A DNA stretch of 64,000 nt from Schizochytrium sp. TIO01 (GCA_004764695.1 SMSO01000009.1:124001-188000); one strand, 5' to 3'. Shown: positions 48,952-63,754, counted from the stretch's first letter. The notes: generated by a model not told the origin, from the sequence alone. Made by a program: numbers and translations.

Positions 48952-51900
48952 ATGCCGCAGGCACGCAGAATTGAGGAAATCAAAGGAGATACAACGGAGA
49001 TATAGTAAGTGCAGGATGGAGAAAGGAGGAGACAGAAGAAGGAGGCATCGCGTCGTCGATGTGTTGTAGTAGTCAGCTTTGTAGAAGAAGAATAGTTCTG
49101 TACTAGTAGTGGCACTAATGAAGAAGTTGGAAATGGCATATACTTACTCTCACTTGTTCACAAACAAACAAACAAGCACAGTCTTGGTTGGGAAAGAATT
49201 GGTCATGAGGCCGCAAAGGCAATCGCAAAGGTACTCGAGGGATGCAAGAACCTTCAAACTTTACAGTACGTTTGTGGAATCATCCACGAGGGAAAGCTAT
49301 CGTAATAGTCAGGACCAAGCTTTTTCTTTCTTTCTTTTTAGTGCTTGGTGTTTGTAGTACTGCTGGTACACTACCTAAGTAGTTTACGTAGTTGGGTACG
49401 CAAAGAAAGGCAAAGAAGTCTTTTCTTTTTTACAAAGAGAAGAAGGAAATCTATATAATTTGATAGGCAGCAGCAGCAGCAGAAGAAGAAGAGCTGATTG
49501 CTTTTTATTGTGAGGAAAAACAAAACAAAACAGGATCAACTGACTGGACCTGTCTTTCCTGACAACGAATGAACAAAACAAACTTATTCATTTATACTCA
49601 CAGTCTTCAGGGCAACAACATTGGCTCGGAGGGCGCAAAGGCCGTCGCAAAGGCACTCGAGGGATGCAAGAACCTTCAAACTTTAGAGTACGTTTGTGGA
49701 ATCATCCACGAGGGAAAGCTATCGTAATAGTCAGGACCAAGCTTTTTCTTTCTTTCTTTTTAGTGCTTGGTGTTTGTAGTACTGCTGGTACACTACCTAA
49801 GTAGTTTACGTAGTTGGGTACGCAAAGAAAGGCAAAGAAGTCTTTTCTTTTTTACAAAGAGAAGAAGGAAATCTATATAATTTGATACGCAGCAGCAGCA
49901 GCAGCAGAAGAAGAAGAGGTGATTGCTTTTTATTGTGAGGAAAAACAAAACAAAACAGGATCAACTGACTGGACCTGTCTTTCCTGACAACGAATGAACA
50001 AAACAAACTTATTCATTTATACTCACAGTCTTCGTAGCAACAACATTGGCGATGAGGGCGCAAAGGCCGTCGCAAAGGCACTCGAGGGATGCAAGAACCT
50101 TCAACTTTACAGTACGTTTGTGGAATCATCCACGAGGGAAAGCTATCGTAATAGTCAGGACCAAGCTTTTTCTTTCTTTCTTTTTAGTGCTTGGTGTTTG
50201 TAGTACTGCTGGTACACTACCTAAGTAGTTTACGTAGTTGGGTACGCAAAGAAAGGCAAAGAAGTCTTTTCTTTTTTACAAAGAGAAGAAGGAAATCTAT
50301 ATAATTTGATAGGCAGCAGCAGCAGAAGAAGAAGAGGTGATTGCTTTTTATTGTGAGGAAAAACAAAACAAAACAGGATCAACTGACTGGACCTGTCTTT
50401 CCTGACAACGAATGAACAAAACAAACTTATTCATTTATACTCACAGTCTTTCTACCAACAACATTGGCGATGAGGGCGCAAAGGCCGTCGCAAAGGCACT
50501 CGAGGGATGCAAGAACCTTCAAACTTTAGAGTACGTTTGTGGAATCATCCACGAGGGAAAGCTATCGTAATAGTCAGGACCAAGCTTTTTCTTTCTTTCT
50601 TTTTAGTGCTTGGTGTTTGTAGTACTGCTGGTACACTACCTAAGTAGTTTACGTAGTTGGGTACGCAAAGAAAGGCAAAGAAGTCTTTTCTTTTTTACAA
50701 AGAGAAGAAGGAAATCTATATAATTTGATAGGCAGCAGCAGCAGCAGAAGAAGAAGAGGTGATTGCTTTTTATTGTGCGGAAAAACAAAACAAAACAGGA
50801 TCAACTGACTGGACCTGTCTTTCCTGACAACGAATGAACAAAACAAACTTATTCATTTATACTCACAGTCTTCAGTACAACAACATTGGCTCGGAGGGCG
50901 CAAAGGCCGTCGCAAAGGCACTCGAGGGATGCAAGAACCTGACTTATCTGAAGTACGTTTGTGGAATCATCCACGAGGGAAAGCTATCGTAATAGTCAGG
51001 ACCAAGCTTTTTCTTTCTTTCTTTTAGTGCTTGGTGTTTGTAGTACTGCTGGTACACTACCTAAGTAGTTTACGTAGTTGGGTACGCAAAGAAAGGCAAA
51101 GAAGTCTTTTCTTTTTTACAAAGAGAAGAAGGAAATCTATATAATTTGATACGCAGCAGCAGCAGCAGCAGCAGAAGAAGAGGTGATTGCTTTTTATTGT
51201 GAGGAAAAACAAAACAAAACAGGATCAACTGACTGGACCTGTCTTTCCTGACAACGAATGAACAAAACAAACTTATTCATTTATACTCACAGTCTTAGGG
51301 AGAACAACATTGGCTCGGAGGGCGCAAAGGCCGTCGCAAAGGCACTCGAGGGATGCAAGAACCTGACTTATCTGAAGTACGTTTGTGGAATCATCCACGA
51401 GGGAAAGCTATCGTAATAGTCAGGACCAAGCTTTTTCTTTCTTTCTTTTTAGTGGTTGGTGTTTGTAGTACTGCTGGTACACTACCTAAGTAGTTTACGT
51501 AGTTGGGTACGCAAAGAAAGGCAAAGAAGACTTTTTTTTTTACAAAGAGAAGAAGGAAATCTATATAATTTGATACGCAGCAGCAGCAGCAGCAGAAGAA
51601 GAAGAGCTGATTGCTTTTTATTGTGAGGAAAAACAAAACAAAACAGGATCAACTGACTGGACCTGTCTTTCCTGACAACGAATGAACAAAACAAACTTAT
51701 TCATGTATACTCACAGTCTTGGTAGCAACAACATTGGCGATGAGGGCGCAAAGGCCGTCGCAAAGGCACTCGAGGGATGCAAGAACCTTCAAGAATTGTA
51801 GTACGTTTGTGGAATCATCCACGAGGGAAAGCTATCGTAATAGTCAGGACCAAGCTTTTTCTTTCTTTCTTTTTAGTGGTTGGTGTTTGTAGTACTGCTG

Positions 51901-54900
51901 GTACACTACCTAAGTAGTTTACGTAGTTGGGTACGCAAAGAAAGGCAAAGAAGTCTTTTTTTTTTACAAAGAGAAGAAGGAGATCTATATAATTTGATAG
52001 GCAGCAGCAGCAGCAGCAGAAGAAGAAGAAGAGGTGATTGCTTTTTATTGTGAGGAAGAACAAAACAAAACAGGATCAACTGACTGGACCTGTCTTTCCT
52101 GACAACAACGAATGAACAAAACAAACTTATTCATTTATACTCACAGTCTTTACAACAACAACATTGGCGATGAGGGCGCAAAGGCCGTCGCAAAGTCTCT
52201 GCACAAAGCATGTCCTTCTGTTCAAATCTAGTAAGTTCCGTTCCCTCTGCTGCTATTCCCAGCTTGCGCAGAGCCTTGCCTTCGCTGGTTCTCTCCATCT
52301 CTCCATATGGACTTCCGAGGCCGTCTTTAGATGCGCTCATCGTTTTTCTAACAAGCGCTTTTACTGTCTTTCTTTCGTTCATTCGTTTACAAAACGCCGC
52401 AGTTTCTATGGTTGGAGTTCTTTGACCCCTAAAGAATTGTTCGAAAGGGTGTGTTCTCCTGGAGAAGATATCGCCGATTCCTCGTCAGAGACCGACTCCA
52501 TAGAGTCAGCAGAAAACGAGCCTTCTGCAGAGCCCAAGAACGAGCAAGACGGCATTGATGGCGCCGGGCTTGCTACTTTGGATGGATCTGGGTAAGTTCA
52601 TTCGGTTAATCTTTGTTTGGGATCGTGTAATCAGTCATTCCACGAATTGAGTTATTGAGATAGAGGGTATCCTAACTTTTACTTTTGCTTCTGCTTTTGT
52701 TGCTGCTTCAACATCATTTTGCTCGTTTGCTTACGTCTTCTTGTTCGTCTCAGAGAACGGGCGGATGGAGCGAGCGTGAGTTTCGCTGATGTGGTGCAGC
52801 TTGCCAAGAAAGTCTCGGACTTGCGCGCGGACCGAGGTGGGGTCAGAGGAAACTCCCTGCAAACTGGGATTGCCTTGCTTGAGGAGTTCGTAGGATCGGC
52901 GATCCAGGGCTACTTTGGCCAAGTGAAGTTGCGACAGGTTTTCGCTGACATCAAGAACTCCAAAGAGAGTCTTGACGTGCTACAAGGCCAGATTCGTGCA
53001 AGCTCTGCTGATGGCTTGCCCAGCCTCATCGAAAAGCGGAACACCGAACGGAGGCACCTGCATTCACTTTTGCAGGTTGTGTACCCATGGGTTCGCGCCA
53101 ACCTTTGTGAAAGTGGCGAGAGTGCAGTGCGAGAATTCAAAGTGAGAGTTGAAAGATTGGTAAGCGATCTAAAGATCAACCTTGCTCCAGTCGATGAAGA
53201 GACCATCACAGATGACTTCAAACACTGTCAAGAACTCGTTATTCAGGCTGTCCAATGCGTGGAAGGGTACAAGAGGAGTGGAGAAGGCCAACACAACAAC
53301 ATTGGTGAACGAAGCCAACAAGCTGTAAAGCGCGTCATCTCTCGATTGTCTGAGCTAGAACTTGGTGATGGATTATGGGTTGCTCTGAGAACACCTGAGC
53401 AGGCCATGAAGCTAGAACCGGAGTTGTCTGAACTTGAGAGTGCTCTCAAGCAAGAGATCGAAGTTCTACAAGGAGATACACTTCGTACCCAATTGTGGGA
53501 GATACTTTGCGCGATAAGTTCAACATTCGCTCGATTTGAAGGATACACTGAATGTGCTGCATTGAATGACACGAGCAAGTGCACACCAGAAAAGCTCTCT
53601 GAGCTGTATGACTATGCAGCACTGGGTTTGAAAGAACCTTCTGTCTCAGATGTTGAAGAATTATACCAGAAACTTGACAAGTCGAGGATAGCCACAGAAA
53701 TTTTGAAGAGAGCCAAAGAAGAACTCGAAATACAGGACATGGATGAGGAAGATCAAGCATATTTTAGAAATCGGATCAAGAAACAAGAGCTCATTCTCTC
53801 TCAAGGCAACCCTATCGACCTTAGCAAAGCTTTTCGTCATAAGCTTGCTGAGACTCTGCAATACGCGCAGGAACATTATCCAGAGTTGCTGCAAGATAGA
53901 GCCTGGCTGGAAAGGCTTCACGTAAGTGCAGAGGGTGTTTTTGAAGTAGCATGTTCTGACCTTTGGTTAACGAATGTCACAGTTACGGACTTCAAACCTG
54001 TCGGCGAGCCCCTTGCTTCCAGAGGTGGCAAGAGAGTACAAAAGGTTCTTGACAACTTTGGTAAAACTATGGTTCTCAAAGAGTTTCAGCTTGGGCATCC
54101 AAGTCAATCCAAAACCTTCTACAGACAAGTTGCCAATCTGGGCAAAGTGGTGTCTCAGCACGTGATACGTATCACTGGTGCTTTTGTGGTCATGACGCAT
54201 GGAGTACCGCGCGGCTGTATCGTCATGCCTTTCTACAAGCAAGGTGACCTTGCCAAGTGGATTGAGAGTCATCCTAACGAAGGCAAAGCAGCACGTGACC
54301 GACTTGCTGTTGGCCTGCTTATCGGCGTGGCGGATTTACATACCCACGGCATTGTGCATTGTGACATCAAACCAGAAAACATTTTCCTCACAAGCAACGG
54401 GACACCATTGATCGGCGACTTTGACGGCATCAAGAATGCAGACTACACTGCAACTTACACATCACTTCAGGCAACGCCACGGTACGTTGCCCCCGAGTTG
54501 CAGAATGGGCCTGTAGATAGGTTTGAAACAGCGATGGACATGTACTCTGTGGGCATCAGCTTAAAGGAGCTGTATCCTACTGAGCGAACCGCTGCCATGC
54601 AGACACTTATCGATGCTCTTACAGCAACAGACCCTGGCCAGCGTCCAACCGCTCGCCAAGCACTCCAACATGAAGCTTTTGGAGCTCCTAAGATCCCTGT
54701 CAAGATGTGCCTAGTATGCATGGAGGAGCATCTGCTCTCCGAGGGCACGAGCTGCGAGGAGGGAGACTTCCTTTGCAGAGACTGTATCGAATCTTCTGTA
54801 GAAGCGGCGGCACGGCCACTTGCTAACGTAAGAGTGGATGCTGATGGAACAATGGCATGCATGAAACCTGAATGTAGTGGAAGGATATCAGGTCAAGAAA

Positions 54901-55442
54901 TCACCCGTCTTGCACCAACTGCTTTGAATCACCTATTGTTGATTGCGAAGATGAAGGCAGAAAATGAAGCAGCAGTTTGGGCGGAGAAGGAGATCCAAAG
55001 GCGCATAGCACCAGTTTTACGTGCTGATGAACAGAATCGCGACGCACGGCTTCATTTACTTCATATTCAAGAGAAGATCTTGAGCACATGTTGTCCGAAC
55101 TGTAAGGCATATGTACACGATTTTGACGGTTGCTGTGCTGTAGAGTGTGGTAATGAGACTTGTGGTCATCACTTCTGCGCTTGGTGTCTTGGCTATAGTT
55201 CTCAGGATGCAGATGCTTGTCATGCTCATGTGAGAACCTGTTCAAGAAGACTTGGGCAAGATCCATTTTTTGCTGATTCTTTTGAGCAGGTTCGTGAGGC
55301 GTGGCAGTTGCTCCGCGCAGAACGTCTGCGTGAGTACTGGAATGCAAAAATTCAGGATGGAAATCTTCGACTCGTTCTAAAAGAGTTATTGTCGCCTTTG
55401 CTAACACCAGATATTGTTGGCGCAAACTTCAGATTGGAATAA
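48952..55442 (+). CDS. Spliced LRR - acidic linker - helical region - Ser/Thr kinase - RBR-like RING protein (gene C, ~1200 aa)
   Basis: Exons, all phase 2: 48952-49004 (MPQARRIEEIKGDTTEI); LRR exons 49182-49265, 49604-49687, 50029-50111 (83 nt), 50447-50530, 50869-50952, 51293-51376, 51717-51800, 52147-52230; linker 52403-52591; terminal 52754-55442. Kinase motifs MVLKEF, HCDIKPEN, GDFD, YVAPE, DMYSVG. Zinc fingers CLVC..C..FLCRDC..CMKPEC and CPNC..DGCCAVEC..CGHHFCAWC. Confidence 0.9.
49182..52195 (+). repeat. Tandem exon+intron cassette array of gene C (~418-430 bp period, 7 near-identical introns)
   Basis: Introns gtacgtttgtggaatcatccacgagg...tatactcacag differ mainly in a (GCA)n(GAA)n microsatellite and a few single-base changes or short indels. 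Confidence 0.96.
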
Positions 55443-59047: not shown

Positions 59048-59166
59048 ACATTCGATCATACCACGCGGGTAACACCTCATCTCATTCGCACTGAGAAGTA
59101 AAGTCGCGTAGGGCCGGGTCAGTAGTATGATAGGGGACTGCATGCGAAGCCCCGGTGTTGAATGTT
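59048..59166 (+). rRNA. 5S: 5S rRNA (second copy)
   Basis: Same as 47604-47722 except base 2; followed by T runs. Confidence 0.92.
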
Positions 59167-63680: not shown

Positions 63681-63754
63681 GTCTCCGTGGCCAAGTTGGA
63701 TAAGGTGCCTGACTACGAATCAGGAGATCGTGGGTTCAAGTCCCGCCGGAGATT
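63681..63754 (+). tRNA. tRNA-Arg(ACG)
   Basis: Acceptor GTCTCCG/CGGAGAT, D arm TGGCCAAGTTGGATAAGG, anticodon arm CCTGA-CT-ACG-AA-TCAGG, T loop GGTTCAAGTCCC, T-run ~18 nt downstream. Confidence 0.95.

Follow-up and report, generated by a model that had tools for sequence, protein, structure and literature searches.

Background

It is known that NLRC genes carry single LRRs in exons of 84 nt. Identical scaffolds with hypervariable contact codons occur in the PRDM9 zinc-finger minisatellite and in the RVDs of TAL effectors, and in MHC genes there is less variation among introns than among the exons for peptide binding.

The ROCO genes of the brown algae Ectocarpus and Saccharina have one LRR per exon and phase-2 introns (PMC3341825, PMC11378527), and exon shuffling and positive selection have been reported for those of Ectocarpus (PMC3341825). 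In Aurantiochytrium limacinum, the LORE-TEARS of Group 5 are units of ~421 bp that occur in about five copies between consecutive 5S genes of the subtelomeric rDNA (preprint 10.1101/2023.06.15.545109). The same preprint describes LORE-TEARS as repeated spacers without GenBank similarity, possibly for chromosome-end maintenance. We describe here an array of LRR exons found in a stretch of 64,000 nt, the whole of which is hereafter called the window.

Results

TRF detected one array at 49198-52195 (period 424, 7.1 copies, 96% matches). Reading of the sequence defined, at 49182-52230, eight single-LRR exons (84 nt each, except for the 83 nt of exon 3) and seven introns of 335-346 nt, with the borders and the exon number given in the initial annotation. 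The cassette introns begin with GTACGT and end with CACAG, and the 84-nt exons are in phase 2, each starting with the final base of one split codon and ending with the first two of another. The array can be read as the 5' part of one gene that starts with the ATG at 48952 and continues through eight LRRs of the RI/NOD2 type and a linker exon into an 895-aa exon. This gene is placed between two 5S genes, and the features are as follows.

47604..47722, + strand, 5S rRNA gene upstream of the LRR-kinase gene (Rfam RF00001, 94.8 bits)
48952..49004, + strand, exon 1, ATG + 17 codons, ending in the split codon TA, phase 2 as the cassettes (sequence reading)
49005..49181, + strand, intron 1, non-cassette (sequence reading, paralogue comparison)
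49182..49265, + strand, LRR exon 1, LGWERIGHEAAKAIAKVLEGCKNLQTL, first-repeat type with private core changes (exon borders, paralogue comparison)
49266..49603, + strand, cassette intron 1, 338 nt, same sequence as the corresponding intron of paralogue C5:12256 (border reading)
49604..49687, + strand, LRR exon 2, windows QG / S / QTL-D (border reading, Pfam LRR_6, PDB matches)
49688..50028, + strand, cassette intron 2, 341 nt, query for the genome-wide intron search (border reading)
50029..50111, + strand, LRR exon 3, RS / D / QTL, 83 nt, one A short in window C (border reading)
50112..50446, + strand, cassette intron 3, 335 nt (border reading)
50447..50530, + strand, LRR exon 4, ST / D / QTL-D (border reading)
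50531..50868, + strand, cassette intron 4, 338 nt (border reading)
50869..50952, + strand, LRR exon 5, QY / S / TYL-N (border reading)
50953..51292, + strand, cassette intron 5, 340 nt (border reading)
51293..51376, + strand, LRR exon 6, RE / S / TYL-N (border reading)
51377..51716, + strand, cassette intron 6, 340 nt (border reading)
51717..51800, + strand, LRR exon 7, GS / D / QEL-Y (border reading)
51801..52146, + strand, cassette intron 7, 346 nt (border reading)
52147..52230, + strand, LRR exon 8, the last repeat, cassette-like to ~52195, then a unique C-terminal half (SLHKACPSVQI) (border reading)
52403..52591, + strand, linker exon, 62 codons, acidic and Ser-rich, frame open and in phase on both sides (sequence reading)
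52754..55442, + strand, long 3' exon with an N-terminal part of ~430 aa, a Ser/Thr kinase and a Cys-rich RBR/RING2-like tail (ORF; stop 55440-55442)
59048..59166, + strand, second 5S rRNA gene, downstream of the LRR-kinase gene (Rfam RF00001, 96.5 bits)

In exon 3, one A of an AAA run is gone at ~50103, within variable window C; if truly absent, it shifts the frame. Save for this base, the germline gene reads from ATG to stop. A somatic assembly of cassettes of the VLR kind, which starts from an incomplete germline gene, does not fit this complete one. The ATG and the GTAAGT/GTAGGT donor of exon 1 are kept in nine paralogues and, in exon 8, paralogue homology falls from the cassette level to 85-92% from 52196 on. 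The linker exon had no match in Pfam, and the RNA fold of cassette intron 2 (z = -1.13) displayed no special structure. Sequence logic and paralogue conservation suggest that the gene is spliced and expressed.

In Pfam, a single LRR exon (exon 2) matched LRR_6 (E=1e-3), and a PDB search with a single 27-aa exon retrieved DRC5 (7.5e-6) and NOD2 (5irm, 1.4e-5), with RI and RanGAP1 also matching; the exon aligned with residues 724-743 of rabbit NOD2. The consensus of 67 exons has the RI-like or NLRC-type form (28-29 residues, LxxLxLxxNxIGxxGAxxLAxxL), with a repeat of 28 residues that reads LxGNNIGSxGAxALAxxL. These matches agree with the initial reading of one RI-type LRR per 84-nt phase-2 exon. 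The long 3' exon matched Pkinase (Pfam, E=4e-28), carries the kinase motifs HCDIKPEN, DFD and APE, and ends in a Cys-rich tail, a weak RBR-like zinc finger, that matched RING2 of Parkin (E=0.022); its first 432 aa had no PDB relative. In the exons searched, Pfam matched neither NACHT nor NB-ARC, the STAND NTPase part by which an NLR is recognized, nor ROC-COR; all matches of the 895-aa exon were of Pkinase type except for a weak one to IBR_2. A soluble protein is predicted: its N-terminus (MPQARRIEEIK) is hydrophilic, no membrane segment was found, and the top 19-residue hydropathy (1.34) is located inside the kinase domain. A plant-type LRR receptor kinase was discarded on account of this N-terminus, the absence of a membrane span and the cytoplasmic RI type of the LRRs.

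The genome carries the cassette intron at least 330 times, spread over 16 contigs and with an identity of 95-100%. It also has at least 51 paralogues of the kinase module, which are 61-96% identical in amino acids and in most cases open over ~925 aa, nearly all of them directly downstream of a cassette array. Cassette introns were 0.8-3.5% different between arrays and 0.5-4.8% within arrays, and the flanks of the same loci were 84.7-95.9% identical, i.e. 4-15% different. With respect to the closest paralogue, the divergence was 20.8% in exon 1 against 3-5% in the non-coding DNA around it, with 3.2% upstream, 5.1% in intron 1 and 0-1.2% in the cassette introns, and LRR3 differed by 14.5% with every change in windows. 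By these comparisons, homogenisation is confined to the cassette.

Family genes lie near rDNA and the 5S genes in the window, and often less than 100 kb from the contig start. The genome has TTAGG telomeres, and Rfam located rDNA units within the window. The telomeres, the 5S/rDNA layout and the repeat periods fit those published for Aurantiochytrium limacinum and support the labyrinthulomycete host proposed in the initial annotation. The array matches the published Group 5 of LORE-TEARS, and the repeat is one already known in the lineage. The earlier opinion that such a system was undescribed there does not hold for the repeat itself, although the text of the preprint (10.1101/2023.06.15.545109) contains neither LRR nor leucine nor kinase.

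Sequence diversity was analysed in the window array and in a genome-wide sample of 92 exons and 93 introns from 14 loci, which were the best matches to the window's intron, so that intron identity in this sample is biased upward. In the introns of the window array, 9 of 333 ungapped columns were variable (pi = 1.0%) and the indels were mostly within a CAG/AAG microsatellite, whereas exons 2-7 presented a pi of 13.5% with all 19 variable columns inside three windows and columns 25-71 invariant. The contrast between uniform introns and variable exon windows was also seen in the sample of 14 loci: in clean arrays, diversity was 0.64, 0.54 and 0.37 in windows A, B and C, respectively, versus 0.010 in the core and 0.025 in the introns. 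The variable positions were x2, x3, x5, x7 and x8 of LxxLxLxxN plus one loop codon, and amino-acid diversity was 0.9 at positions 2 and 3. The initial annotation, which had also proposed the genome-wide collection of cassettes with per-site diversity, was accurate in these respects: introns much more alike than the windows, a core without synonymous change in the internal exons, hexamers after TCTT translated as GW, QG, RS, ST, QY, RE, GS and YN, a TCG/GAT toggle, exon ends of QTL, TYL or QEL, and variable codons at x positions of the concave face. Polishing of a repeat-rich long-read assembly could make introns look more alike than they are.

Inside the exon, the synonymous difference was 0.003 in the core and 0.47-0.60 in the windows, i.e. 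more than 100-fold higher. In the latter, pN (0.57) and pS (0.47; pN/pS ~1.2) are both near saturation and positive selection is therefore not formally demonstrated, codon-model tests being unsafe because of recombination. Coding constraint is apparent in that 66 of the 67 84-nt exons are open in frame, compared with 19 of 67 in each other frame. Window A contained no stop codons when 5.7 were expected (P=0.0004), its residues being mostly S, N, R, G, Y, Q, E, W and D, and the variable windows avoid both stop codons and aliphatic residues. At Leu24 and Leu27 the amino acid is kept in 66 of 67 exons, yet pS is 0.60.

The windows are also mosaic. The variants of window C are discrete types common to several loci, all four combinations of B and C window types were found, and one A hexamer pairs with different B and C windows. 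Genome-wide, 25 of the 92 exons differ from 84 nt, and of the 38 indels found in exons, 35 fall within variable windows. This concentration of indels could indicate window-targeted mutation besides selection. Some of the arrays look garbled by assembly.

Discussion

We believe that the most plausible explanation (probability about 0.7) is that the array encodes the ligand-binding half of the proteins of a soluble LRR-kinase family, in which the cassette undergoes concerted evolution and the binding-face codons diversifying selection. The unit is a 424-bp cassette, made of an 84-nt phase-2 exon for one 28-residue LRR and an intron of ~340 nt, and the protein, predicted to be soluble, has a kinase and an RBR-like tail. 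Unequal crossing-over inside arrays may keep intron and exon core near identical, and exchange among arrays of different chromosome ends, by gene conversion or by ectopic recombination, could account for homogeneity across the genome. Diversifying selection would retain old, very different variants at the concave-surface codons and one loop codon, and recombination in the conserved blocks would shuffle these short windows into new combinations and alter repeat number. The protein may act as an intracellular sensor signalling through its kinase and ligase-like tail. The sequence data establish the gene anatomy, the family, the diversity contrast, the constraint on coding and the mosaic windows, and from these we infer how the cassettes are homogenised, that selection maintains the diversity, and the sensor role.

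It is unlikely that the near-identity of the introns is mostly an artefact of assembly or polishing, in which piled reads erased private differences and the window contrast became overstated. In favor of an artefact, Nanopore data underlie the assembly published for the matching species, two arrays combine exon indels concentrated in variable windows, allele hybrids and the lowest intron diversity, and the C24 and C32 arrays are identically spaced, which suggests redundant contigs. However, neighbouring units of the window array still differ in microsatellite length and in SNPs private to single introns, and in ten arrays all or almost all of the exons are clean 84-nt units whose frame is open. 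Moreover, blurring would be expected to scramble the windows, which are in-frame and stop-free, and the kinase ORFs are intact in most paralogues, indicating good base accuracy.

Active diversification, germline or somatic, by mutation aimed at the windows or by templated short-patch conversion, with intron and core as homology arms and degenerate arrays such as C7 and C23 as donor stores, seems to us improbable. It would fit the jump in synonymous difference over a few nucleotides, the placement of the exon indels, the broken frames and perfect cores of the long C7 and C23 arrays, and the difference in LRR3 of the closest paralogue, a patch of several bases restricted to windows B and C. Against it, the germline gene is complete, the hybrid strings CTCGAT and CGATCG at the TCG/GAT site resemble a mixed-read consensus, and the garbled arrays have the least diverse introns (0.5-0.6%), as collapse predicts. 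In addition, discrete window variants common to loci and Leu codons kept within windows are the reason why the variation fits better with old selected variants than with fresh mutation. The recombination or conversion repertoire of the initial annotation is in line with the mosaic windows between cassettes and loci; an active or somatic diversifying system is not supported. Still more doubtful is a programmable receptor repertoire of a single-celled stramenopile, in which a process using intron and core as homology arms would rewrite only the binding-face windows; it would proceed by templated short-patch conversion or window-directed mutation, with degenerate arrays as possible donors and possibly during clonal growth.

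There is very little room for the view that the 424-bp repeat serves as a structural satellite of the subtelomeres, non-coding and open in frame by coincidence. The ~421-bp Group 5 repeats were indeed reported to lack GenBank similarity and to have a proposed role at chromosome ends (10.1101/2023.06.15.545109), but the imbalance between frames, the match of a single 27-aa exon to RI/NOD2-type LRRs, and the stop codons and aliphatic residues avoided in the windows argue otherwise, as do GT...AG borders that occur in all units in one phase and, in dozens of paralogues, link an ATG exon with a kinase ORF, both of them conserved. Finally, the number of near-identical intron copies might recall a mobile introner spread into LRR genes, which we regard as very unlikely: every copy examined was flanked by the same LRR exon in the same phase at ~424-bp spacing, none of them was seen in an unrelated gene, the listed copies adjoin kinase paralogues, and homogeneity is as high in the exon core as in the intron, the repeating unit being exon plus intron.

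If concerted evolution with selection on binding-face codons is correct, LORE-TEARS spacers, at least those of the 424-bp class, would consist of exons and introns from a large gene family whose products are candidate intracellular sensors. Subtelomeric recombination, as in parasite antigen gene families, would be linked to one-LRR-per-exon shuffling, so far a brown-algal feature, and a sensor-kinase-ligase architecture would be added in the same protist, for which persistent mirusvirus infections have been reported (PMC12606086). The locus would also be an unusually clean natural case of a homogenised scaffold with diversity kept at contact residues, given the synonymous contrast within each 84-nt exon, and protist innate immunity would become testable in a culturable organism.

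With regard to known systems, the family resembles the brown-algal ROCO genes in its stramenopile host, one LRR per short exon, phase-2 introns, exon shuffling and variable repeat number, and in soluble proteins with variable residues on the concave face and a signalling domain downstream. In contrast, the ROCO exons are of 72 nt (24-aa plant-like LRRs) rather than 84 nt (28-aa, RI/NOD2 type), their partner domain is ROC-COR rather than a kinase with an RBR-like tail, and the cassette described here is homogenised over 51 or more loci associated with rDNA and 5S genes. We found no report of near-identical introns in brown-algal ROCO genes (PMC3341825, PMC11378527); in the 2012 paper of Zambounis et al. 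we found no statement of the similar introns that the initial annotation attributed to Ectocarpus, and the term gene conversion does not figure in it (PMC3341825).

The array (period 424, 7.1 copies) is close to LORE-TEARS Group 5 (~421 bp, about five copies) in its unit, and shares with it a place between two 5S genes, here at 47604 and 59048, and a genome with TTAGG telomeres; the other LORE-TEARS groups (~406, 366 and 385 bp) have window counterparts of 411-417, 371 and 370-397 bp; unlike in their description, the window repeat reads as LRR-kinase exons and introns. The 28-residue repeats are of the type found in ribonuclease inhibitor and in the LRR domains of vertebrate NOD1, NOD2 and NLRC proteins, although the latter have the NACHT or NB-ARC absent here and their repeats are not known to be homogenised together with introns. 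Lamprey variable lymphocyte receptors similarly combine LRR cassettes, conserved ends and variable concave-face residues, but their germline gene is incomplete and is assembled somatically from flanking cassettes, whereas the gene described here is complete. PRDM9 and TAL effectors differ in folds and ligands, and their arrays are not known to have an intron per repeat. Even so, the family would have in common with them, and with MHC genes, a scaffold under concerted evolution with selected diversity at a few ligand-contact residues, and non-coding or synonymous sites that vary less than the contact codons.

Structure of the array and of the gene

Tandem Repeats Finder reported only one array at the locus, at 49198-52195, with 7.1 copies of a 424-bp unit and 96% matches. 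When it was divided wherever the GTACGT donor and the CACAG acceptor recur, eight exons emerged, separated by seven introns of 335-346 nt, in agreement with the eight exons and introns of about 340 nt of the initial annotation; the strings quoted there were likewise all found, namely the hexamers that follow TCTT, the TCG/GAT toggle and the exon ends QTL, TYL or QEL. The exons are 84 nt in length, save exon 3 (50029-50111), whose 83 nt are one A short of an AAA run inside the third variable window, a detail previously overlooked; if this A were truly absent, the predicted reading frame would be shifted. Only 9 of 333 ungapped columns varied among the seven cassette introns (mean pairwise difference, 1.0%), whereas exons 2-7 differed by 13.5%, with all 19 variable columns falling inside three windows (columns 5-10, 23-25 and 73-83; A, B and C below). 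This contrast, already remarked on in the initial annotation, is real and statistically strong. The Rfam search found no family within the array. A reading of the intron as structured RNA or as a long inverted repeat was rejected (fold z = -1.13; 12 of 100 shuffles folded equally well), and so was an RSS-like signal at the CACAG acceptor, which by eye has the wrong orientation, with CAC away from the coding end.

The first base of each cassette exon closes a split codon and the last two start the next one, so that the cassette introns are phase 2 and any of these exons could be lost without breaking the frame. The remaining predicted exons of the gene are as follows.

Exons of the LRR-kinase gene outside the array
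48952-49004: exon 1, 53 nt opening with the ATG, upstream of the array, ending in the cassette phase
52403-52591: linker exon, 62 codons, downstream of the array, in phase with the long exon
52754-55442: long exon, protein kinase domain and Cys-rich tail

The ATG and donor site of exon 1 are kept in nine paralogues, and the C7 copy carries an in-frame TAA in this exon. The kinase domain of the long exon (Pkinase, E=4e-28) contains HCDIKPEN, DFD and APE motifs, DFD replacing the usual DFG at 54356-54420 with the catalytic HCDIKPEN and APE retained; a pattern search of this exon disclosed no clear GxGxxG loop. The Cys-rich tail gave weak matches only (parkin RING2, E=0.022; IBR_2, E=0.86), and for residues 1-430 of the long exon neither Pfam nor PDB gave a relative. 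When the exons were searched one at a time, one 27-residue cassette exon matched Pfam LRR_6 and, in PDB, DRC5, rabbit NOD2 (LVGNNIGSVGAQALASMLE), ribonuclease inhibitor and RanGAP1. NACHT, NB-ARC and ROC-COR domains were absent in a Pfam search of the exons, and no segment across the exons of the gene was hydrophobic enough for a membrane span. Because of these exon matches, the motifs and the lack of a membrane span, we read the product as a predicted soluble protein in which eight LRRs of the RI/NOD2 type are combined with a kinase and an RBR-like tail. Three homologues, with 51-59% identity, were found in Logan.

A homogenised cassette family

The 341-nt intron matched at least 330 sites at 95-100% identity, spread over 16 contigs of the 64-Mb genome and grouped in arrays with a unit spacing of about 424 bp. 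The 895-aa kinase module had at least 51 paralogues (61-96% amino-acid identity); in most of them the frame runs unbroken for about 925 aa, and nearly all lie directly 3' of a cassette array. Introners were rejected as an explanation, since what repeats is an exon together with its intron and every copy examined lay in a cassette. For the cassette analysis, 30 loci out of these at least 330 cassettes were merged into 14 segments with 92 exons and 93 introns, in which the genes carried 5 to 11 repeats and the C7 array at least 19.

Divergence of the window from its paralogues and among arrays
1 kb upstream of the array, window against paralogues: 89.5-95.9% identical
From 52196 onward, window against paralogues: 84.7-91.9% identical
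Cassette introns, between arrays: 0.8-3.5% different
Cassette introns, within arrays: 0.5-4.8% different

Divergence from the closest paralogue (C5:12256)
Upstream DNA: 3.2% different
Exon 1 (48952-49004): 20.8% different, flanking non-coding DNA only 3-5%
Intron 1: 5.1% different
LRR exon 1: 10.7% different
LRR exon 2: 0% different
LRR exon 3: 14.5% different, all changes in the three variable windows
Cassette introns: 0, 1.2 and 1.2% different

Taken together, the flank and cassette-intron figures show that the cassette has been homogenised across loci that are otherwise 4-15% diverged. The coding windows outpace non-coding DNA even when two copies of the gene are almost the same. The exon 1 changes relative to the closest paralogue are concentrated in codons 2-6 and at the split codon ahead of the first LRR, which indicates that the N-terminal cap is also fast-evolving.

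The cassette introns are spaced alike at two loci, G000:C24:458-6146 and G000:C32:2889857-2895680, and both have a kinase copy alongside, so that one contig may be redundant or a duplication may have occurred very recently. On contigs C30, C31, C13 and C34, paralogues occupy both contig starts and internal sites 1.4-3.8 Mb apart. The contigs bearing internal copies reach 9.8 Mb, the published chromosomes of Aurantiochytrium limacinum being of 1-4 Mb, and these large contigs may be chromosomes joined via shared subtelomeric repeats.

Coding constraint, variable residues and quality of the arrays

The 84-nt exons were open in the LRR frame in 66 of 67 cases, against 19 of 67 in each other frame. 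The per-site comparison with intron diversity proposed in the initial annotation gave the values below.

Nucleotide diversity (pi) in clean arrays
Window A: 0.64
Window B: 0.54
Window C: 0.37
45-nt exon core: 0.010
Intron: 0.025

Random sets of intron columns exceeded the exon core (e.g. 49629-49673) in diversity (P=0.005). The few changes in the core were mostly non-synonymous (pN 0.012, pS 0.003), and this pattern could reflect a constraint on the nucleotide sequence itself. The variable residues were x2, x3, x5, x7 and x8 of LxxLxLxxN plus the residue following IG, sites that we placed on the LRR motif and on the NOD2 alignment. In the standard LRR fold, such positions line the concave beta-sheet and the loop after it. 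Motif mapping thus favors the earlier proposal that the variable codons correspond to the x positions of the LRR strand. Positions 2 and 3 each took 15 different amino acids. Window A held no stop codon, against 5.7 from column shuffles (P=0.0004), and encoded mainly S, N, R, G, Y, Q, E, W and D; aliphatic residues were nearly absent. Core codons 9-23 had a synonymous difference of 0.003, the variable codons one of 0.47, and Leu24 and Leu27 one of 0.60, even though leucine is retained at the last two in 66 of 67 exons. This synonymous contrast and the leucine retention argue that the windows hold deep divergence filtered by protein-level selection and that the neighbouring sequence is young. 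In the variable windows, which also recombine, pN/pS was about 1.2 with both values near saturation.

Exons of a length other than 84 nt made up 25 of the 92, and 35 of 38 exon indel events lay in the variable windows, 29 of them in the arrays of contigs C7 and C23. At the TCG/GAT site these two arrays contain hybrids such as CTCGAT and CGATCG, and their introns are the least diverse (0.5-0.6%), which is how a consensus drawn from reads of several cassettes is expected to look. We therefore think that both arrays are partly garbled, and this may also explain the base that exon 3 lacks. A less likely possibility is that they are real degenerate arrays, hit by a process directed at the windows.

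Window-C strings fell into discrete types common to several loci, all four combinations of B and C types were present, and one A hexamer occurred with differing B and C windows. Such a mosaic is what recombination or conversion leaves behind when its breakpoints lie in the conserved blocks, and it supports the view that these processes shape the variable LRR repertoire. The best-supported reading is concerted evolution of the 424-bp exon plus intron cassette with diversifying selection on contact codons: unequal exchange and ectopic conversion among arrays would homogenise the cassettes, selection would preserve old variants at these contact codons, and new window combinations would arise by shuffling. 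Both the homogenising process and the selective force are what we infer from these patterns.

Chromosomal setting

The window contains two rDNA units, and the LRR-kinase gene lies between two 5S genes (Rfam). The telomere repeat of the genome is TTAGG, of which there is none inside the window; TTAGGG telomeres were discarded, as none was found.

Other features of the window
1-5309: second LRR cassette array, period 370-397 bp, 81-89% matches, upstream of an 18S gene
8909-14427, + strand: rDNA unit, 18S-5.8S-28S
15416-17474 and 33950-35187: mirrored arrays, period 411-417 bp, between the rDNA units
18695-21675 and 30050-32244: mirrored arrays, period 371 bp, between the rDNA units
22058-27052, - strand: copia-type retroelement ORF, flanked by the mirrored arrays
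36208-41723, - strand: rDNA unit, 18S-5.8S-28S
45042-45278, - strand: ORF fragment with an RI-type LRR (NRLGNNKIDNKGCAALADALKTNHTLTMLE), between 18S and 5S genes
63681-63754, + strand: tRNA gene (Rfam, 60.2 bits)

A. limacinum MYA-1381 has TTAGG telomeres and subtelomeric rDNA, and its published subtelomeric LORE-TEARS repeats include Group 5, about 5 copies of a unit of about 421 bp enclosed by a pair of consecutive 5S genes, and other groups of about 406, 366 and 385 bp (10.1101/2023.06.15.545109). On the basis of TTAGG, the 5S/rDNA layout and the matching periods (411-417, 371 and 370-397 bp for the other arrays of the window), we identify the 424-bp array with LORE-TEARS Group 5 and take the host to be A. 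limacinum or a near relative. The words LRR, leucine and kinase are absent from that preprint (10.1101/2023.06.15.545109), and our literature search found no other publication on LORE-TEARS and no paper tying thraustochytrids or Aurantiochytrium to such LRR genes. The repeat itself is already described in this lineage.

The array at 1-5309, consistent with LORE-TEARS Group 0 (about 385 bp), is far less homogenised than the 424-bp class. The ORF at 45042-45278 represents another LRR gene, one without a homogenised cassette array. The two complete rDNA units at 8909-41723 face each other, and the segment looks like two chromosome-end structures head to head, through either a real fusion or a mis-join.

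Comparison with brown-algal ROCO genes

We infer a putative sensor role for the protein from its architecture, from the residues it uses and from its analogy to ROCO genes of brown algae and to NOD-like receptors. The ROCO family is the closest described system, with 72-nt single-LRR exons in phase 2, exon shuffling and selection on the concave face (PMC3341825), as well as alternative splicing (PMC11378527). Both families have one LRR per exon and phase-2 introns. In contrast, they differ in LRR class (72-nt exons in ROCO, 84-nt in TIO01) and in signalling domains, the TIO01 family bearing a kinase and an RBR-like tail; moreover, the TIO01 introns and exon core are extremely homogenised across dozens of loci, and the family is linked to rDNA and 5S genes.
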